Positions 820 through 46,950 of a stretch of DNA of 64,000 nt are shown here, piece by piece. The notes beneath the pieces are model-generated. The model saw only the letters and a list, made by a program, of their open reading frames with translations. It did no database searches and was not told the DNA's origin. A program made the position numbers and the translations under genes. Positions within the stretch are counted from its first letter, which is position 1; each line of letters begins with the position of its first letter. Source of the stretch: Basidiobolus meristosporus CBS 931.73 (Eukaryota > Fungi > Basidiobolomycota); contig MCFE01000011.1 in NCBI GenBank assembly GCA_002104905.1, positions 186,001-250,000 of the forward strand. Reading direction: 5' to 3'.

Positions 820-1785
820 ATGAGGTGGTCTTGTCATCCATTCCTAACTACCTCTGTGCTAGTACTTTTCATTACAAATTGCAATGCGAACACCAGCAGA
901 TTCACTTTCGAAAAATCCTGGTCGCCACATTCCTTGAATTTGACCGAGTGGAATTTCCGTGGCGGCTCGAAAACCTCGTTTGGTAGCGTGTCAACGACAC
1001 AAGACCCCTTCGGCAAAAATAATGATACCTGTTACTCGATTTTCTACGCAAAACAAAGCTATGGAATAGAGGGTGGCAATAACAGTGGTGTCCACGTGAA
1101 CTGTAAGCCATTGGAGGACCAGCGTGCTAATCGAGCGATGCTCAGCTACGAGGTTGGTTTTCCAGCGGATTTCAATTGGGTTAAAGGAGGAAAGTTGCCA
1201 GGTTTATTTGGGGGATCGATCAGCTCGGGATGCACTGGTGGTCGTGAGGCCAATGGCGGAAACTGCTTCTCCATGAGACTAATGTGGCGTGGTGGAGGAG
1301 TCGGTGAAGTGTATGTCTATCTACCCAAAGTGCTCAACACTGACCTATGCGCAAGATCCGATGTTACATGCAACATGGAGTATGGCTCATCGATTGGCAG
1401 GAATTTCAAATTCAAGGCCGGTTCCTGGACCAAGATAGAGCTGTTCGTTCAATTGAATACGGGCAGCGAGCAAAATGGCTACTTGAAATTGTACATTGAT
1501 GGGGAGTTGCGAGTGGATGTAAATAAGCTCATTTATCGTACCTACGACGATATGTTTGTTGATACCATTGAGTTCAGCTCCTTCTTTGGCGGTTCAACTC
1601 CAAACTATGCCACTCCTGTGGACACCAATATCTTCGTCAAGAATATTCAGTTCCAGATCGATTCGGGACTTTTGAATAATAGCTTGATCGCATTAGACAG
1701 TTCTTCAGTTGTAGCAACTTCCCTCGGTTACACCAACCTTATAATGGCCGCAATTTTTGTATTACTAATTTCTACAGCTATATAG
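820..1785 (+). CDS. Polysaccharide lyase family 14 (alginate/glucuronan lyase-like), secreted, hydrophobic C-terminal tail (possible GPI anchor)
   Basis: Intronless 321 aa ORF. It has an N-terminal hydrophobic signal and PL14-type motifs (Y.V.FP.DF.WVKGGKLPGL.GG, CFSMRLMWR, G.WT.IEL.V.LN, FSSFFGGS). The C-terminus is Ser-rich and ends in the hydrophobic stretch LIMAAIFVLLISTAI. Confidence 0.85.
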   Translation: MRWSCHPFLTTSVLVLFITNCNANTSRFTFEKSWSPHSLNLTEWNFRGGSKTSFGSVSTTQDPFGKNNDTCYSIFYAKQSYGIEGGNNSGVHVNCKPLEDQRANRAMLSYEVGFPADFNWVKGGKLPGLFGGSISSGCTGGREANGGNCFSMRLMWRGGGVGEVYVYLPKVLNTDLCARSDVTCNMEYGSSIGRNFKFKAGSWTKIELFVQLNTGSEQNGYLKLYIDGELRVDVNKLIYRTYDDMFVDTIEFSSFFGGSTPNYATPVDTNIFVKNIQFQIDSGLLNNSLIALDSSSVVATSLGYTNLIMAAIFVLLISTAI

Positions 1786-6598: not shown

Positions 6599-7667
6599 AT
6601 GATTTATGAAGAAATTCTCCAGGTACGCCTGAATAATGAAGTAGTCGTCATGCATGGAAGTCCTGAGGATTCGGTCGGCTCAGTCGTTTCCGGCTTCGTG
6701 CTGTTTACTCCCTCAAAGTCAATCAAAGTCCGCTATATTTGTTTAAAATTACAAGGAACTTTAAGCCTAGAAAATTCGCAAGGTTCTATATTAGTAGAAT
6801 CCAGAATCTCAAGTGCCTGATGCTAACGCTCACTTAATTTCTGTAGAACTTTATGGAGCATATAGGACTCTGACACAGGATAAATTATTGCTCCTTGGTC
6901 CCGGCATAGGCTATCATTGCTTTGAAGCTCAGCAACAGTACCGATTTGATTTTGAACTACCACTCAAAGGGAGTCTTCCGGAAACGGTAGAGGTTCCATA
7001 CGGGAGAATATTATATCAAGTGTCAGTAACAGTAGTACGTCCGTTCCCTTTTACCAACATCAGGAGACACCGAAGTTTTCGAGTCGAGCGAGTGTATCTA
7101 CCAACTGAAGTCCCTGAAATTAGTAACCATTCATCGGGCATCTGGGGCAAATTCATATATTATCATATTAGTGTTCCACAAGCCATAGCTACCATAGGCA
7201 ATACACTGACAATCACCGCCAAGTATGTGTTCAAGTCGTATTCGTTAAAACTAGACAAAATCAGTTTACGCTTAATGGAAATCACCACATATCGCCATCC
7301 GACAACCATGATCGAGACTTATGAGTGTACGCAGCTGGCCCGCGGAAAGAAGAATTTTTCAGAGATGCGTAGCAAACACGAGCTGTGCATTAGAGAAAGG
7401 ATAACGATCAAGATACCGACGTTATCTGGATGCAACTGTGAAACGAACTTTATATCTGTGAGCCATAAGCTGATGGTCAAGACCAGGTTCATCGGCAACG
7501 ATAACCGAAAATGGTCGGCGATGGTTGAGATACCTGTAGTGTTACAAAGCCCTATACAACATGAGCTGTCTTGCAGCCCACCAAGATACTCTAACATAAG
7601 TGCCGAATTCTTCGGTGCTACTCCTCCACCTGCTTACGAGTCGAAAGAAACAATAACATGCACGTAA
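6599..7667 (+). CDS. Alpha-arrestin (ART/Rsp5 adaptor) no.1, 2 exons
   Basis: Exon 6599-6782, phase-1 intron 6783-6846 (GT..CTAAC..TAG), exon 6847-7667. Arrestin-N motifs: G.V.F....IKV..I.LKL.G, Y.F.F.LP..LPET.....G.I.Y. The tail carries the PY motifs SPPRY and PPPAY. Confidence 0.85.
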
Positions 7668-8732
7668 GTAGTTGCCACTTGGACGTACCCAACATGGTAT
7701 TAGATACACGAGTATTGCGGATATAATTAATTCATCCCGATAAGCCACCGCCTATTTGGAGAGCCATACCGATTGTTTATTTGTAAATTATAGTTACATT
7801 TCGTACTAAGCCCTCGTTTGAGGAAACGATTGCCCAAGCAATGTAAAGCCCTAAGTATTGTACAAACTGAATTAAACCTTTGATCATTAAGTCATCGATT
7901 TTTTGAACACCTAAGACAGTATCCCGACCCCGAGTTACAGATGTTTCCCCCAAGTTCCAAATCTCAAGCGCAAGTGCGGATGTATTTTCCACGTTGACCA
8001 AACACAAATCGATGGAAACTTGGCTATTCAGATGGCCGTATCTAACCACAGATATGTCCACCACTTGTAATCGGTAATTGCCCGCCCACCTAGAAAACAC
8101 CTGATTTCGAAACATTCCAGCAAAGAAACCAGGCAACAGCATGTAGGCGGCTTGACAACTGCGGTTCTTTGCTTCTACATTGATGGAACACCGTATGCTG
8201 TCATTCCTAATACTCCCATCCAACGTTAAATTCGCATATGATCGATCAAAAACGGGTATGGCTGAGAATAAAGAATATCATGCTGGTTTTTCCATTGTTA
8301 GCATGTGCAAAAATAGAATGACCAATATGAATCATATCGGAGAACAACGTGAATTACGTAGATAGTGCGCAGCAGATGGCTTGCTAATATCTAAGGTTTT
8401 ACTGGTGATGAATTCTGCTAGATGTGAAAGAAGACATACTCCTCAACCCCTTTTCCCTTCGGGTCCCCTTGATTTATGATCAGTTAGCGCGAACCAATTT
8501 ATCTCGTGGAAGCGGATTGGTAATAACATTGATTTCAATGCGAGATATCTGGAGAATTTCCAACAACGCGGTTTTTGCAACAAGGGGAAAGACAATGAGG
8601 AAATCAAGGGGGTATGGTAGTATAAAGAGCAGGAGTGGGAATATCTGTCAGTAAATTCCTTATTCTTTTACCGGATAGCACTCCGCTACGCTCAAATTAT
8701 CAGCCCAGATCGTATTCTTCAGTTCTCCAAGT

Positions 8733-11940: not shown

Positions 11941-12939
11941 ATGCCCGGCCCTTTCATTAAAATCCACCTTAACAATCCATATTTTTCCCTTTATGGTTGT
12001 CCATCGACCTCGGCTGGAAAGGCTCTAAAAGGAACGGTAGTAGTTCACTTGAAACGAGCCACCAGAATAAGGTCGTTGAAATTGAGCCTGCTTGGAGAAA
12101 GTAATGTTGATTGGATATATAGCGCAGCACTGTTGAATAGGAAGTGTCGATTTAAGAGTATATTGGCTGACATGTCACTGATCCTGTTAGAGTGCAATCC
12201 AAACTATCACATCCTACCTCCCGGAGAGCATGAATTCCCCTTCGAGTTCGCGTTGGATGGAGACTTGATGGAAACGATCTCTACTCAGGTTGTTAGATGT
12301 CACTATTTTCTTACGGCCGTTGCGGAAAGACCACATTTTCAAACGAATCTCACAACCAAAAAAGAGGTGTTAGTTAAGCGCTTCTATCCACAGGAAGATG
12401 ACCCAATAATATTATCTGAGGCCATTTCCAACCTGGTGAACATCGAGGTATTTGCTCATAAGAAGGTGTATGGTTTAGGTGATGTTATTCCCATCAACAT
12501 CCGGTGCATCCCATTGTCGAGTAACGTGGATGTCAGAATTAACTGCGCTATCAAAGAGATTACCACTTATCGCAAACCAGAAAGCTCTAAAACAAATGTC
12601 GAAAAACGATGGTATAGAGCTCTGTTTGAAAATGACTACGTGCCAGCGCTGTTTGACAGGTCGATCGACTTCCCAATTCACTCTCACAGTGTGAAATTTG
12701 ATTGTACTACCCCGTATGTTGAAACGAGGCATGAGATAGTCATCAAAGTCGAGGCCAAATCTCCCAAGGACTCCGATAACTATTTCCTCAAACTTCCGGT
12801 GTTCATTTTATCTGATTCATTTGACAAAATCTATGAGACCCTTCCTGAGTATCGCCCTTCAATTGATACGTCAAGGAATATGTATTCGCTATCTATCAAT
12901 CCCCCCTCATATACTTCCCTAAACCAAATTCTAGTTTAA
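11941..12939 (+). CDS. Alpha-arrestin no.2, intronless (332 aa)
   Basis: Arrestin N and C motifs (LKGTVVVHLKRATRIRSLKL.L.G, LPPGEHEFPFEF.L.GDL.ET, C.T..V...H.I.I.V). The tail carries the PY motifs LPEY and PPSY. Confidence 0.9.
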   Translation: MPGPFIKIHLNNPYFSLYGCPSTSAGKALKGTVVVHLKRATRIRSLKLSLLGESNVDWIYSAALLNRKCRFKSILADMSLILLECNPNYHILPPGEHEFPFEFALDGDLMETISTQVVRCHYFLTAVAERPHFQTNLTTKKEVLVKRFYPQEDDPIILSEAISNLVNIEVFAHKKVYGLGDVIPINIRCIPLSSNVDVRINCAIKEITTYRKPESSKTNVEKRWYRALFENDYVPALFDRSIDFPIHSHSVKFDCTTPYVETRHEIVIKVEAKSPKDSDNYFLKLPVFILSDSFDKIYETLPEYRPSIDTSRNMYSLSINPPSYTSLNQILV

Positions 12940-15084: not shown

Positions 15085-16662
15085 ATGAACGAAGAGAAAA
15101 AGGTTGGGCACGACGTAAAGCTCACATCAGTTAATGATGAGTATGAGGATCAGACGGACCCAGCGGATATAAAGATTCGTGTTGCTGGGAAAATCCCCCT
15201 TGCCGCTTGGTTTATTATTGTCACTGAGTTATGCGAGCGGTTTGCTTTTTATGGAGCTTCTCTATTATTTCAGCCCTATATGATCAAAGTTCTTGGGTTC
15301 AACAAGGGGACAGCTACTGCTGTAAATAGAGGTTTCCAGTTTATGGCGTACCTTACTACCATTCTTGGCGCGATTATAGCTGATAGATATTTCGGAAAAT
15401 TCAAGACCATAGTTTTTTTCTCCATCCTTTATATGGTTGGTTTGGCCATCTTGGCGCTCAGCGCACTACCATCCTCTGTGGGAGGAAGCTTCGGGGTTGT
15501 TGGATTCATTCTCTCATTGTACATTTTCATTTCCTTTGGCACAGGTGGTATCAAGTCCAACGTATCCTCATTCGCCGCTGAACAAGTCAAGGATGGCCTG
15601 TATCCTACAAAAGCTGCTGGAGTATACACCGACTCTCAACTTACTGTTGAACGAGTATTTCGCTTCTTCTACTGGGCAATCAACCTCGGGGCTTTATTGG
15701 GCCAATTCATTTGCCCCATTATCGCTAACGACTACGGCTCCTACCCGATTGCTTTCTCTCTTCCGGCCATCATGTTCGTCGTCGGGATTATTATATTCGT
15801 TGCCGCCAAGAAACTTTACTTTGTCAAGCCTCCATCTGGCACAGTCCTTTCCAAAACCTATTGCTGTATCAAATATGCAGTGTCTCATCGTAAAGCTGCG
15901 AAGAGCAATCACAACTCCCGTGGGCCCATCGACCACTGGTTAGACTATGCCAAAGTTGATGGTGTGGAGTGGAACGCTGAATTTGTTGATGACCTGAAGA
16001 AAACCTTGCGTGCATGCTTGGTATTCTTATTCTATCCGTTTTACTGGGCCTTATATTATAATATGTCTGACAACTTCATCAACATGGGACTTACTATGGA
16101 GCGACCATCTTTTATTGGCGGCCCGGAACAGCTGAATCTCATCAACAGTCTTGTATTGGTTGTTGCCATCCCAATTTTTGACTCGGTGATTTTTCCCATT
16201 TTAAGAAGAATGGGATGTCGGTTAGGTCCAATAACACGGATTACCATCGGATTTACCATCGCTACCTTCACTTTTGTATACGTAACAGTTCTCCAGCACC
16301 AAGTATACAGTACTGGACCTTACTACGATTTCACCGATTTGAGCAGTCTGCCGCCCGGAAAGGAGCCAGTCAACAATATTTCGATTTGGTGGCAAGTCAT
16401 TCCATTTATTGGTATTGCCATATCTGAGATTTTCGCCTCAGTAACCGGACTAGAGTTTGCGTTCCGTCAAGCCGCGCCCGAACTCAAATCTGTTGTCACA
16501 GCATTATTCCTGTTTACGAACTGTGGTGGAAGTTTGATTGGATTGATCCTAGCGATTTGGAGCAACGATCCGTACTTTGTCTATGTGTTCGGAATCCAAA
16601 CCGGATTGATGGCTGTTATGACTGTTGTCTTCTACTGGTTGTTCAGGAAGTACGACAGTTAA
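15085..16662 (+). CDS. PTR2: POT/PTR2 family proton-dependent oligopeptide transporter
   Basis: Intronless 525 aa multi-TM ORF with the ELCERFAFYG (ExxERFxYY-like) motif, GAIIADRYFGKFKTI, GTGGIKSNVS, FRFFYWAINLGAL and GLEFAF..AP..LKS. Confidence 0.93.
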   Translation: MNEEKKVGHDVKLTSVNDEYEDQTDPADIKIRVAGKIPLAAWFIIVTELCERFAFYGASLLFQPYMIKVLGFNKGTATAVNRGFQFMAYLTTILGAIIADRYFGKFKTIVFFSILYMVGLAILALSALPSSVGGSFGVVGFILSLYIFISFGTGGIKSNVSSFAAEQVKDGLYPTKAAGVYTDSQLTVERVFRFFYWAINLGALLGQFICPIIANDYGSYPIAFSLPAIMFVVGIIIFVAAKKLYFVKPPSGTVLSKTYCCIKYAVSHRKAAKSNHNSRGPIDHWLDYAKVDGVEWNAEFVDDLKKTLRACLVFLFYPFYWALYYNMSDNFINMGLTMERPSFIGGPEQLNLINSLVLVVAIPIFDSVIFPILRRMGCRLGPITRITIGFTIATFTFVYVTVLQHQVYSTGPYYDFTDLSSLPPGKEPVNNISIWWQVIPFIGIAISEIFASVTGLEFAFRQAAPELKSVVTALFLFTNCGGSLIGLILAIWSNDPYFVYVFGIQTGLMAVMTVVFYWLFRKYDS

Positions 16663-20795: not shown

Positions 20796-21925
20796 TTAGG
20801 CTGTAGATGTACGGCAGTATCTGTTTGTTTCTTCATATTCTGGAGTGCATGCGTCAAAAAGTGTCTCGTATGAGGGAGGCAATGAAGTCGATGTAAGGCA
20901 ACGTTCAATAGGTCGATAAGGCGGTAGATCTAGAAATATCTCCTGGCTGGACCCCGAAATAATGACAACAGGAATACCAACGTAGACAGCTTTAACCGCA
21001 CCAGGTGAAGTACGGAATTCAATTTTCACCTTCAGTTTGTGTCGAACGTAGATCAAATCGGTCACACAATCACATTGAATAGTGCTACTAGATAATGGAA
21101 TCTCCAGGCTAAGACTCTTCTCCCAATTACCTTGATTTTTAGGGAAGTCTACATTCGAAAGTCGACTGATCCAACGTGTTTGGAGCTTGCACCTTCCTCC
21201 CCCAGCGACCCTGTAAGTGATATATTCCTTTAACAAGCAGGATACTTTTCGTAGCCTTGTATCTTCAGACATTAGCAATATGTTGAAGTGGATGGGTATT
21301 ATCTCCCCTAGACCAAATGCTTTAGAAGGGATGTGGACGTCGTACGCAAGCTTATTGTTCCAAACTTCGGAAACGCTAACTGCTTGGATGAGTTCTGTTG
21401 AAGAAGGCAAAGCAAATCGCTTGATAACGATATCCCTCTCGATCGAATAGTTTGTACAAAAAGTAGGACGATCTATGGTTGCTTTCAGTGTATATTCAAC
21501 AGTGCCGAATTCGGTATGAATGGTTTCAGGTAGGTCCCCGCTCAATGCCACTTCGAAAGGATATGAATGCTCTCCTTTGCGCAGCACCATGGGCTTCTTG
21601 TGTGCTTCAATGAAGGTCCACGGAAAGGAAATCACCGTTCGAGTTTCATTCCTCGTTTTATTTTTTGAGCTCGGCACTAGGTGAAGAAAGCAGTCAATGA
21701 GTCAGTAAAACCAACGCCAGACGTAGCACGACTAAATTTACCATGATCCCAGAAAACTTTCATTTTGCCTTCCAAGAGAAGAGAAACACTTCTAACTTTA
21801 AGAGGCTCGGGGAGGTATAAACATAGGGTACCGCGTAACACGGCACCTGCTGATTCAGTGGCTGGACCATAGAAGATGACGCTCTCATTAGCTGGTAGGA
21901 TTTTAATGATAGGAGCTCGCGTCAT
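20796..21925 (-). CDS. Alpha-arrestin no.3, 2 exons (354 aa)
   Basis: Exon 21925-21742, phase-1 intron 21741-21677 (65 nt), exon 21676-20796. Motifs LRGTL.L.L.EPLKVRSV.L.LEG and G.HSYPFE..LSGDLPETI.T.FG.V.Y.LKA.IDRP. PY-type motifs LPPY, PPSY and TPEY. Confidence 0.9.
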
Positions 21926-43677: not shown

Positions 43678-46600
43678 ATGTCTGATCCACACCAATCAAA
43701 CAAAAGCCTTGGTAATGAGCCTTCAAATGCTTCCGAACTACTGAACAATCTACAGGGCAGGAGGACTGGAAAACTCCCAGAAAAATCGTCTGGTTTTAGT
43801 GGAATTGCAAACTCTACTCGTTCTCTATTTCGTAGCATACTGGGTAATGGTGTAACCAACGGAACAACATCAAACGCTAATCTTGCAAACTTACTTTCCA
43901 ACAAACCCGGAAACTCGACTTCAGTCAACCGAGATACTTCTGGTCCGTTGGAAGGTTCTAGTCAATGGGCAGAGGCCATTAACAATACTTCACACCCTGT
44001 AGCTTCAGGTGGCTCTTCGACTCAATCCAATTTCAACACAATTATTCAACGGGAGGTTACTATACCGTCCCTTGAAGATGAGTTAAATCGTTTCACGGAT
44101 GTCGGCACTTCCTCCAATTCAGGAGAAGGAAATGAATTCGAAAGTATTCATGAAAATACTTTGGATATCTCGCTCGCATCCGAACTTCCAAACTTTTCTG
44201 TTCATAGCGAAAACTCTATCGGGGCCAGATTTCCTCTTAATCGGTTTTCATTGAAATCTGCCCCACATGTTGGTCTATGCGTAAATAGCACTGAACCTTC
44301 GTTAATCACTTCAGACAAAAACACCTCACTCATTGCTGAGAAGAGAGCTTATGCCTGGGCCGATGAATTCCTGAGTCAGTTCAGTGAGAGTTCAGGTGAA
44401 AGTCATACGACGGAGAGTATTGGCAAACACCGCGATGCCCCTAATCTTAATGAAGATACATCAAGTGCCCAGGGTGAGCAATATCTTAACGAATCGCTCG
44501 ACATCCAAAGGAATATTGACGACAAACCATCAAATTCAAATGCACACATTTCATTGGAGAGTATGATCCAAAGCCCAGATTTCTCTACATCTGAGCTGAC
44601 TGTTCCCCTACAGGATGATATGGCTCTAGAAGAAACCTGGCGACAAACAGATTATAATGATGGTATAGACGCTGGGAGCAGCTTGACCCGTGAAGATCCT
44701 CTGAGAGATTATAGTGAATATTCAGACGGTGCTGACATTGTGGCACTCTTGAATGGGGGAAGCTTTCCTGCAGAGTTATTACCGACACCTTTCGATATAT
44801 CTGTTGTAGAGCAATCACCAACGCAAGCCAATAACGTTCACAATGACTCAGAATGGATAGCTGAGTTTAATCAAGAAGATAAAGGACGCCAAGTCGATTT
44901 ATTAACAGAGGCTGAAGGACAGGAAGCAGTAGATTCTTGGGCTTGGACGTCTGAATTTGAAAGGCAATTATCAACCGAACCCGAAATGCCACTTTTCGAA
45001 ACTTCCGAGGTTAACGATGGGGCTGATGTCATTTCATTCCTGAACAGCACAGAATTCCCAGAAGAGCTTTCAGTGCAGCTGGATGAGGCTTCCAATTTCG
45101 CCAACGCGTGGCACGATTCAACCACAGATCAGGAAAATAACTTTGACTGGTCCAGCGAGTTTAATTGTGACCAAAATGTACCCACTAACGAGAGCTGGGA
45201 TGATACAGAGTTGGAGTCTGCTTCCGACAAGGTCTTCGATGAGGCTCAGGCTCAATTCATTTCAAAGCAAAGTGGTGTTTTGCATAGTGGCAATAGCAAG
45301 GATCTTTACCTTGACAATTCTGAAGTAGTGGATGGTGGAGATGTGATCGCTTTCCTGAATAGTGAGCATTTTCCTGATAGTCTTATACCCAGCGAAGACG
45401 CGCTACTATCCGAAGGAATGTCAGAGTTCGAAACCGAGCTGGAGAAAGACACTACAGCAGGCTGGTTAGCAGAGTTTAATCACGCTCACGCTGATATCGA
45501 AGAGAGTGACGGCAATGATGTGGTCGCTTTTCTTAACAGCTCAGATTTCCCCAAGGAACTTACAAGTAATCCTGAGGATATGGCAGATATGGAGCGGGCA
45601 TGGAATTCTTCCCTGGAGGCAGATTGGTCGACTGAGTTTACGAATGCCGACACAGAGGACGATGCTATTAATGATAAATCAATAGGCTCCCCACGTTCAT
45701 TAGACAAGTGGCTAAAAGAGTTCAACGGAAGTGAAACAGAAGACGACTTCTTGAAGCCAGCTATTGCTTCTAACCGTTCAACAGATGTAAATACGTATTT
45801 TGGAGATGGTTATTTCAACTACATTAAGGAAGAAGACACAGGTCTCATTGTGGACGGAGCAGAAGTGGTTGAATTCCTAAGTGCAGGTGCATTCCCTTTG
45901 GAGCTCACTCCAGATATCACAGATTTAGACGAGGTATCGGAAATGGAAGTCAAAGTAGTTGAAAGCTGGTTCAACGAATTTCAAAAATACGATCCAGACT
46001 CGCAAAATTTGGTTCGTGATATCGCTGGAGACAATTCAGACCTTACAGAAGACGAGATGAACCTTCAGTGGGATCACCAATTTCTTCGCCCTCCCTACCT
46101 GGATGAAGATTTAATTTCGGAACTGAGCGAATCCCGCCCACCTACTCCGCCTGATGGTTTTGAGGTGGTGGCATTTCTAAATCACTCTGATTTCCCGACA
46201 GAACTGACAACTAAGACGCCGGTACTCTCCACTCATGACTCAGTCAAAATCCATTCGTTTACGGAGGACCAGGTCAACCAGTCCCATTTACAGCGTTGGC
46301 TTGATGAATTTGAAGACGGCCAAGACGGTACTAAAGAGAATCCAATTGCTGGGTGGGTAAGCGAATTCTCAGAAATCCAGGATCTAATACGTCAGGAGAT
46401 AGATCAGATTGACAACATTGACAATGAGGAGTTGAGTTTCGATACCTATCATGAGTATACATCTGTATTCTCTCCCAGAAATCATGGGTTTTCCATGTAT
46501 CACGGCAGTAGTGGTCAAACGCAAGCGGCCCTGGATTCCTTCGATAGTTGGACCCGTGATTTCCTGCAGGCCGAGTTCGAAAACAAAATCACAGGTGATA

Positions 46601-46950
46601 ATGAAGGGATTTATTCGGAATCTTCTCCATTGAGCGTTCAGCGCTCAGACAACTTGGATGGTACTTCCGATCACATATATATGCTGGACAAAAAGGGATC
46701 AATTGGATCCACAATCAAGGACCTTATTCAGGAGATTGCTAATGAAATTTCGGCAGAGGATTTCCTATATAACTTCGATTATCAAGAGGAGTCTAACAAC
46801 AAGCCCATCACGACGCACCCGACTGTCCAAACGTATGCTTCTGGCGACATCAGATACGAGTTTACAGAGAAAGTTGGCTTTAACTCGGAGGTTACCAAGA
46901 AGAACGCTCTGGATAGACTTCAACAGCTAAGGAAACATATTCTTGGCTAG
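43678..46950 (+). CDS. 1090 aa acidic repeat protein with 12 WxxxF motifs and six DG-x-[DE]-V-V-x-F-L-N-x3-FP-x-EL repeats (peroxin co-receptor-like, no TPR)
   Basis: 3.27 kb stop-free ATG ORF with motifs counted directly in the translation. It ends in the basic amphipathic ALDRLQQLRKHILG. Function is inferred only from the motifs. Confidence 0.85.
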   Translation: MSDPHQSNKSLGNEPSNASELLNNLQGRRTGKLPEKSSGFSGIANSTRSLFRSILGNGVTNGTTSNANLANLLSNKPGNSTSVNRDTSGPLEGSSQWAEAINNTSHPVASGGSSTQSNFNTIIQREVTIPSLEDELNRFTDVGTSSNSGEGNEFESIHENTLDISLASELPNFSVHSENSIGARFPLNRFSLKSAPHVGLCVNSTEPSLITSDKNTSLIAEKRAYAWADEFLSQFSESSGESHTTESIGKHRDAPNLNEDTSSAQGEQYLNESLDIQRNIDDKPSNSNAHISLESMIQSPDFSTSELTVPLQDDMALEETWRQTDYNDGIDAGSSLTREDPLRDYSEYSDGADIVALLNGGSFPAELLPTPFDISVVEQSPTQANNVHNDSEWIAEFNQEDKGRQVDLLTEAEGQEAVDSWAWTSEFERQLSTEPEMPLFETSEVNDGADVISFLNSTEFPEELSVQLDEASNFANAWHDSTTDQENNFDWSSEFNCDQNVPTNESWDDTELESASDKVFDEAQAQFISKQSGVLHSGNSKDLYLDNSEVVDGGDVIAFLNSEHFPDSLIPSEDALLSEGMSEFETELEKDTTAGWLAEFNHAHADIEESDGNDVVAFLNSSDFPKELTSNPEDMADMERAWNSSLEADWSTEFTNADTEDDAINDKSIGSPRSLDKWLKEFNGSETEDDFLKPAIASNRSTDVNTYFGDGYFNYIKEEDTGLIVDGAEVVEFLSAGAFPLELTPDITDLDEVSEMEVKVVESWFNEFQKYDPDSQNLVRDIAGDNSDLTEDEMNLQWDHQFLRPPYLDEDLISELSESRPPTPPDGFEVVAFLNHSDFPTELTTKTPVLSTHDSVKIHSFTEDQVNQSHLQRWLDEFEDGQDGTKENPIAGWVSEFSEIQDLIRQEIDQIDNIDNEELSFDTYHEYTSVFSPRNHGFSMYHGSSGQTQAALDSFDSWTRDFLQAEFENKITGDNEGIYSESSPLSVQRSDNLDGTSDHIYMLDKKGSIGSTIKDLIQEIANEISAEDFLYNFDYQEESNNKPITTHPTVQTYASGDIRYEFTEKVGFNSEVTKKNALDRLQQLRKHILG

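Follow-up and report, generated by a model that had tools for sequence, protein, structure and literature searches.

What is encoded by a long fungal gene whose product carries 12 W-x-x-x-F pentapeptides, interleaved with six copies of a second, unfamiliar repeat? The gene lies in a 64,000-nucleotide stretch of DNA from Basidiobolus meristosporus CBS 931.73 (GCA_002104905.1, contig MCFE01000011.1, positions 186,001 to 250,000), all of which is called the window here. Its open reading frame (ORF), at 43678-46950 on the forward strand, begins with ATG and runs through 1090 codons with zero internal stops, just as an initial annotation of this sequence had read it, and the public annotation of the same contig (GCA_002104905.1, MCFE01000011.1) also places one single-exon gene here, without a Pfam match. 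The window is intron-rich and long ORFs are rare in it, the next-longest encoding 525 amino acids (aa). Our tentative answer, ranked first among the readings considered, is that the protein may be a genus-restricted, multivalent ligand of the PEX14/PEX13 docking machinery, acting like the N-terminal region of PEX5; we infer its peroxisomal role from the motif grammar only.

The pentapeptides begin at aa 227, 393, 423, 491, 596, 650, 678, 764, 798, 874, 893 and 958. Ten of the 12 read WxxEF, the remaining two being WDHQF and WTRDF, and the grammar W-x-x-[E/Q/D]-[F/Y] fits all 12. The initial annotation had listed the same 12 pentapeptides, with ten as WxxEF, and each was found in its place. Twelve of the 18 Trp residues of the protein fall in W...F, and in 5000 shuffles of the protein the count of W...F averaged 0.91 and reached 5 at most, compared with the 12 observed. 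Glu at position 4 in 10/12 motifs has a binomial P = 2e-8 against the local Glu frequency of 0.114. Predicted helices cover most of the motifs, in the full-length AlphaFold2 (AF2) model and in the model of one unit described below. The strict i/i+4 spacing together with the near-invariant Glu indicates one defined pocket and not fuzzy acidic-aromatic contacts, and it is because of this that the PEX14/PEX13-ligand reading was ranked first. The gene and its W motifs are as follows, with the counterpart of each motif in the orthologue of Basidiobolus ranarum:

43678-46950 (+): single-exon gene of 1090 aa plus stop, from the ORF list and called as one gene in the public annotation
44356-44370 (+): W motif 1, WADEF (aa 227), which precedes the DG array; identical in B. 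ranarum, within predicted helix 215-237
44854-44868 (+): W motif 2, WIAEF (aa 393); WAAEF in B. ranarum
44944-44958 (+): W motif 3, WTSEF (aa 423); WSTEF in B. ranarum
45148-45162 (+): W motif 4, WSSEF (aa 491); WSAEF in B. ranarum
45463-45477 (+): W motif 5, WLAEF (aa 596), in predicted helix 592-606; WLTEF in B. ranarum
45625-45639 (+): W motif 6, WSTEF (aa 650), within the long helix of the unit model; WASEF in B. ranarum
45709-45723 (+): W motif 7, WLKEF (aa 678); WLEEF in B. ranarum
45967-45981 (+): W motif 8, WFNEF (aa 764); identical in B. ranarum
46069-46083 (+): W motif 9, WDHQF (aa 798); WGHQL in B. ranarum, the sole motif not kept
46297-46311 (+): W motif 10, WLDEF (aa 874), in predicted helix 863-880 with a predicted local distance difference test (pLDDT) score of about 65; identical in B. 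ranarum
46354-46368 (+): W motif 11, WVSEF (aa 893), which overlaps the sequence EFSEI; WMSEFSEIQDL in B. ranarum
46549-46563 (+): W motif 12, WTRDF (aa 958); WTKDF in B. ranarum

The second component of the array is the repeat DG..VV.FLN...FP.EL, six copies of which start at aa 350, 447, 552, 611, 726 and 826 and together span nucleotides 44725-46209, where they had been placed originally:

44725-44781 (+): DG repeat 1 (aa 350-368), whose best match is repeat 1 of B. ranarum
45016-45072 (+): DG repeat 2 (aa 447-465), from the sequence and the cross-species repeat comparison
45331-45387 (+): DG repeat 3 (aa 552-570), from the sequence and the cross-species repeat comparison
45508-45564 (+): DG repeat 4 (aa 611-629), a short helix in the AF2 unit model
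45853-45909 (+): DG repeat 5 (aa 726-744), from the sequence and the cross-species repeat comparison
46153-46209 (+): DG repeat 6 (aa 826-844), from the sequence and the cross-species repeat comparison

Each DG repeat opens a bipartite unit, in which DG-x-[DE]-V-V-x-F-L-N is followed by an F-P-x-E-L turn and then by W-x-x-E-F. The distance from the DG start to the first WxxEF is 34-48 residues in every unit despite differing linker sequences, and the length of the linker differs between orthologous units (for example, 44 vs 34 residues in unit 3). When the 12 units of both species were aligned, D, G, L, F, P, L and then W, E, F were invariant, and Glu occupied position 4 in 12/12 of the W motifs that come first in a unit. 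Additional W-x-x-[EQD]-F motifs sit between units and WADEF precedes the array; where W motifs had initially been described as following most DG repeats, one to three follow every one of them. Each DG repeat of B. meristosporus has its closest match in the positionally equivalent repeat of B. ranarum and no DNA-level tandem repeats were found within the gene, from which it follows that the six-fold array is old and predates the split of the two species. The repeat had gone unrecognised in the initial annotation and it stayed so here, with no significant match in Pfam or in PDB searches with the repeat profile and the unit profile; as far as these searches show, the DG motif appears to be new. 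Comparison by eye of the DG repeat with the kinesin W-acidic, PAM2 and SUMO-interaction motifs showed that the spacings do not fit, and a possible likeness of VVAFLNS to helix 1 of the PEX14 N-domain was unsupported by the Pfam scan, which included Pex14_N and gave no match at E<=10.

Two side observations concern the surroundings of the W motifs. The sequence EFSEI at 46363-46377 (aa 896-900) fits the core [FWY]xx[ILV] of the LC3-interacting region/Atg8-interacting motif (LIR/AIM) after acidic residues; it is kept in B. ranarum and is the only conserved LIR-like site in the protein. In units 2 and 4 a second conserved Trp stands 8-13 residues upstream of WxxEF (45111-45125, aa 478-482, and 45601-45615, aa 642-646), the sequences in the two species being AWHDS and IWKQS in unit 2 and AWNSSL and LWNDSL in unit 4, which suggests an extended W...W..EF helix in some units.

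An exhaustive phmmer search of 1.84 billion cluster representatives returned three matches, namely the query itself and two fragments from B. ranarum, P0011 (522 aa, the N-terminal part) and P0010 (448 aa, residues 635-1090). These derive from one orthologue, which is split by contig ends in the B. ranarum assembly (GCA_040143965.1). The first 544 codons are at L007:1-1632(-), in a frame open to the contig edge and divergent from RPL31 as in the window; the last 562 codons are at L008:3-1691(+), also open to the contig edge and with a TPT transporter downstream as in the window. Approximately 16 residues between the two fragments are unseen, and the termini match those of the query (start MSD.H, end KHILG). 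Because two contig ends cut the gene, it is annotated in B. ranarum as two unrelated partial proteins, P0011 having a spurious ...SSRV tail and P0010 starting from an internal Met. Near the orthologue on L007 there are called genes of 75 and 76 aa (7670-7897(+) and 8396-8626(-)). A word-index protein search with aa 340-1090 matched only the protein itself, a feature search of the ESM Atlas gave no usable match for the whole protein or for aa 585-920, and PDB sequence searches with the whole protein, the DG-repeat profile and the unit profile gave best E-values of 0.26-0.55 to unrelated proteins, with no PEX5 among them. As far as these searches reach, the family appears to be confined to the genus Basidiobolus.

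In the pairwise alignment with B. ranarum, 6/6 DG repeats and 11/12 W motifs are kept in register, which indicates that these features are not due to chance. The only homologue found thus retains both elements, with the DG repeat again in six copies, and the situation that would have spoken against the original proposal, homologues with the DG repeat and without WxxxF, was not seen. The proportion of nonsynonymous differences (pN) is 0.106 in the W motifs and 0.125 in the DG repeats, compared with 0.378 for the middle-region linkers, and the N- and C-terminal regions have values of 0.27 and 0.30, respectively; the linkers of the acidic array are 40% identical between the species, whose synonymous sites are saturated. 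The missing RNA record and the absence of the gene from a paralogous segment (both taken up below) could be taken to mean that this is a spurious or decaying ORF without function, an explanation to which we give hardly any credence. The open frame extends over 3.3 kb where long ORFs are rare, it is open also in a second species with saturated synonymous sites, and pN is well below the synonymous value (pS) and lowest in the motifs. This pattern of conservation rules out a spurious ORF and places the function in the short motifs, and on these sequence comparisons such an explanation is effectively refuted. The gene is real and selectively maintained.

The full-length AF2 model has a mean pLDDT of 33.5; most W motifs are covered by short helices, and further helices occur in the C-terminal region. 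When one unit was modelled with the 12-unit alignment, the mean pLDDT was 74, far above that of the same stretch in the full-length model, and the predicted template modelling score (pTM) was 0.36; in this model DVVAFL forms a short helix and FP a turn, and the W motif lies in a helix of 33 residues. This higher pLDDT, and the spacing of 34-48 residues held from DG helix to first WxxEF while the linkers diverged, would suit a structural repeat of ~60-residue helical modules, in which V, F, L, W and F form an intra- or intermolecular hydrophobic contact (by fold-back or self-association) and the W motifs are core residues. We consider such modules unlikely, given that the low pTM and the exclusively generic helix matches point to an extended helix rather than a compact domain: Foldseek found no match with the unit model and VIA-align returned generic long helices only, with Z <= 4.3. 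Furthermore, the linker lengths vary between orthologous units, as in the case of unit 3, and the extra W motifs sit outside the units. In these models, the units look like pre-formed helical motifs in a disordered chain and not like a known compact domain.

The protein as a whole is divided as follows, with 212 acidic and 65 basic residues overall and an isoelectric point of 4.1:

43678-44355 (+): N-terminal region (aa 1-226), rich in Ser, Asn and Thr and near-neutral, with 22 acidic and 17 basic residues and AF2 pLDDT below 50
44356-46563 (+): strongly acidic motif array (aa 227-962, 736 residues), of which 168 residues are acidic and 35 basic; the 12 W motifs and the six DG repeats all lie within it
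46564-46947 (+): C-terminal region (aa 963-1090), with two conserved helices (aa 1005-1031 and 1071-1089) of AF2 pLDDT 65-69

The N-terminal region is 55% identical to that of B. ranarum and has conserved islands at FSGIANSTRSLFRS, LSNKPGNST, PSLEDEL and RFPLNRFSLKSAP. The last of these, at 44236-44274 (aa 187-199), is nearly identical in both species within a variable Ser-rich stretch, and by its sequence looks like a candidate basophilic kinase site or 14-3-3-type site. The C-terminal region is 53% identical, with MLDKK.SI.STIKDLI.EIANEI and TKKNALDRL.QLRKHILG nearly invariant; its last helix is basic and amphipathic. Cys occurs only at positions 201 and 497, both unconserved in B. ranarum. 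The Pfam scan gave 0 families at E<=10 and a TPR domain was undetected, no hydrophobic membrane span was found (maximum Kyte-Doolittle-19 score 1.36), and peroxisomal targeting signals of types 1 and 2 (PTS1, PTS2) were not found. Among the other short motifs tried, the AP-2/EH motifs (NPF, DPF, FxDxF), the clathrin box, KPWE and FFAT are likewise absent from the protein. The protein is soluble, intrinsically disordered and strongly acidic.

The N-terminal region of PEX5 is disordered and partly helical, and each of its W-x-x-x-F/Y motifs constitutes a PEX14-binding site of its own; in human PEX5 Glu121, which is position 4 of WAQEF, forms a salt bridge with Lys56 of PEX14 (PMC8086558). The PEX13 SH3 domain is bound by the same PEX5 motifs (PMC11024197), and crossing of the PEX13 YG phase requires the motifs, as does the directionality that lumenal PEX14 provides (PMC12173945). 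Fungal receptors that lack TPR and are built on such motifs exist in the form of PEX18/20/21 (PMC12173945, PMC8172628). The PEX5-type character that had been assigned to the W motifs of the Basidiobolus protein holds, in that their grammar matches the di-aromatic motifs of PEX5, including Glu at position 4. By analogy, the WxxEF helices would dock on the N-terminal domain of PEX14 with Trp and Phe in two pockets and Glu paired with a conserved Lys; they would also engage the SH3 domain of PEX13 and partition into its YG phase. The protein would thereby present the peroxisomal import machinery with a 12-valent ligand, and a second partner would be held by the DG helices, in as many as six copies. 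Having no conserved Cys and no TPR, the protein would be unable to recycle, or to recognise PTS1, in the manner of PEX5; it might pass inward and remain bound to lumenal PEX14, bring its partner in, or compete with receptors. A bolder version, which strikes us as improbable, makes it a third kind of peroxisomal import factor: TPR-less, Cys-less and 12-valent, carrying itself via the PEX13 YG phase onto lumenal PEX14, with the DG helices importing or anchoring up to six copies of a signal-less partner. In that case a non-recycling 'piggy-back' carrier or lumenal scaffold would have been invented within one fungal genus.

A number of points weigh against a peroxisomal ligand. It is the motif alone that ties the gene to peroxisomes, and acidic disordered chains with aromatic residues are also used by other systems, activation domains being one example. 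The N-terminal Cys motif is absent and a PEX7-binding domain is not recognisable. Neither peroxisomal genes nor peroxins were found near the gene, among its neighbours or in the rest of the window, and no RNA run is listed for its expression. The exhaustive phmmer search found no homologue outside Basidiobolus, and a protein with no homologue beyond one genus is not a core peroxin. The 1090-aa gene is absent from the paralogous segment of either species, with no relic by tblastn (L002, L005), so it is either dispensable in one paralogon or arose after the duplication. Support was also not obtained from complex prediction: aa 860-915 (W motifs 10 and 11) with PEX14_YEAST 1-70 scored 0.23 and 0.24, below the mark of 0.34 under which no verdict is given, for a cross-species pairing with a disordered chain of a class that the tool calls untested, and a score of 0.24 is no evidence for or against binding. 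A literature search for the string 'WxxEF' gave no paper containing it, and the literature on Basidiobolus had nothing useful on its peroxins. Of the peroxisomal docking scaffold or import receptor proposed in the initial annotation, the fit of the motif grammar to PEX5 therefore stands, and direct support was not found.

Several of these points would equally suit a multivalent motif scaffold with no peroxisomal role, in which the WxxEF and DG helices dock on a coactivator or Mediator-type surface, a trafficking adaptor or the selective-autophagy machinery, the likeness to PEX5 being convergent or coincidental. This is a serious possibility, to which we lean somewhat less. The protein is a genus-restricted orphan with no link to peroxins by homology or neighbourhood, and an acidic disordered chain bearing W, F and L has the composition of acidic activation domains; that of Gcn4 uses W-x-x-L-F. 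The one conserved LIR-like EFSEI is in keeping with an autophagic partner, and the PEX14 complex prediction, though no evidence either way, gives no support to the peroxisomal alternative. However, the strict i+4 spacing from W to F, with Glu at position 4 in 10/12 motifs and in all that come first in a unit, fits one pocket geometry; Pfam shows no DNA-binding or other domain, and NPF, DPF, FxDxF and clathrin-box motifs are missing. We therefore retain, tentatively, a ligand of PEX14 and PEX13 as the first reading.

The neighbours of the gene encode RPL31, a DUF7789 protein, a TPT transporter and a RING protein, and the order RPL31 <-> gene -> TPT transporter is conserved between B. meristosporus and B. 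ranarum. The RPL31 protein beside the gene falls in a cluster with named Basidiobolus entries. A paralogous segment is present at L002:7687-10366 in B. meristosporus (MCFE01000404.1) and at L005:7332-10425 in B. ranarum, and the order RING - UQ_con - TPT - RPL31 - DUF7789-like is common to the window and this segment. In the paralogous segment of both species RPL31 lies directly beside TPT, with a spacer of just 650-940 bp. There are at least three RPL31 copies in B. meristosporus, on different contigs, which is consistent with large-scale duplication. Elsewhere, the window encodes a PL14 lyase and a POT transporter and has arrestin-like ORFs. Arrestin N and C domains are present in three ORFs within 15 kb (6813-7667(+), 11941-12939(+) and 20796-21677(-)), which may represent a local arrestin gene cluster; a POT-family peptide transporter (15085-16662) sits among them. 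A full-length domain of polysaccharide lyase family 14 (E = 9e-66) is encoded by the ORF at 820-1785(+).

Should the WxxEF array prove to bind PEX14/PEX13, the Basidiobolus protein would be the first example, apart from PEX5 and PEX18/20/21, of a protein built around the motif, and it has the highest motif count in this comparison. It would then offer a natural test of current import models, namely of the number of motifs required for crossing the YG phase and of the fate of a motif-bearing protein that cannot be ubiquitinated on Cys and recycled, and the six copies of the DG motif would be a lead to a new partner. If the array does not bind, it shows that pentapeptides with PEX5-type grammar can evolve and be retained in a different role, and motif-based annotation would call for caution. 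Either way, this young, genus-restricted gene is a clean example of selection acting almost only on short helical motifs.

When set against the known receptors, the protein bore out the original view that it is neither PEX5 nor a canonical PEX20, having no TPR, no conserved Cys and no relative outside Basidiobolus. PEX5 binds PTS1 with a C-terminal TPR domain, of which there was no sign here in Pfam (none at E<=10) or in the AF2 model, which is without a folded domain, and the gene downstream encodes the TPT transporter and not TPR exons. The conserved N-terminal Cys, through which PEX5 is mono-ubiquitinated and recycled, has no counterpart: as noted initially, Cys is absent near the N-terminus, and in both species the first 200 residues have none, the N-terminal half in B. 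ranarum being entirely Cys-free. Sequence homology to PEX5 was not found by phmmer against the 1.84 billion representatives or in the PDB searches. What the two do share is multiple W-x-x-x-F/Y motifs in a disordered region (here 12 motifs, with pLDDT below 50 and local helices). More precisely, the likeness is to the N-terminal region of PEX5, as both are acidic disordered chains with W-x-x-[EQD]-[FY] in transient amphipathic helices and other short helices interspersed, whereas the Basidiobolus protein is about three times longer than that region and has a DG repeat that PEX5 lacks, as far as the searches tell. Human PEX5 has seven such motifs and one LVAEF (PMC8086558), compared with 12 motifs here.

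The PTS2 co-receptors PEX20, PEX18 and PEX21 resemble the Basidiobolus protein in being TPR-less, largely disordered and fungal, and in reaching PEX14/PEX13 through WxxxF/Y motifs. Three features define the PEX20 family (PMC8172628): a Cys motif at the N-terminus, one or a few WxxxF/Y motifs and a domain that binds PEX7. By that definition (PMC8172628), the Basidiobolus protein differs in having no Cys motif, in having 12 copies of the WxxxF/Y motif that it shares with the family, and in having no recognisable PEX7-binding domain, for which Pfam has no model; exhaustive phmmer revealed no similarity to PEX20, which argues against such a domain but is no test of a short one. The proximal FxxxF motif of PEX13 and the aromatic motif of PEX19 resemble the W motifs in being short helices, with aromatic residues at i/i+4, whose binding site is that of the PEX14 N-domain or of PEX13 SH3 (PMC11024197). 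These differ in being single regulatory motifs of conserved peroxins rather than a multivalent array in an orphan. Atg30 and Atg36 are lineage-restricted receptors for selective autophagy, fast-evolving and disordered, with short motifs that bind peroxisomal membrane proteins. They resemble the Basidiobolus protein in being taxon-restricted, disordered and built of short motifs, but are not known to use WxxxF arrays, and the Basidiobolus protein has one conserved LIR-like site and no evident Atg11-binding site. Among these systems, the analogy suggests that it most likely acts in the way of the N-terminal region of PEX5, and it belongs to neither the PEX5 nor the PEX20 family. The protein itself is an orphan, and its W motif represents a familiar type of ligand, here in an arrangement that is new and extreme.

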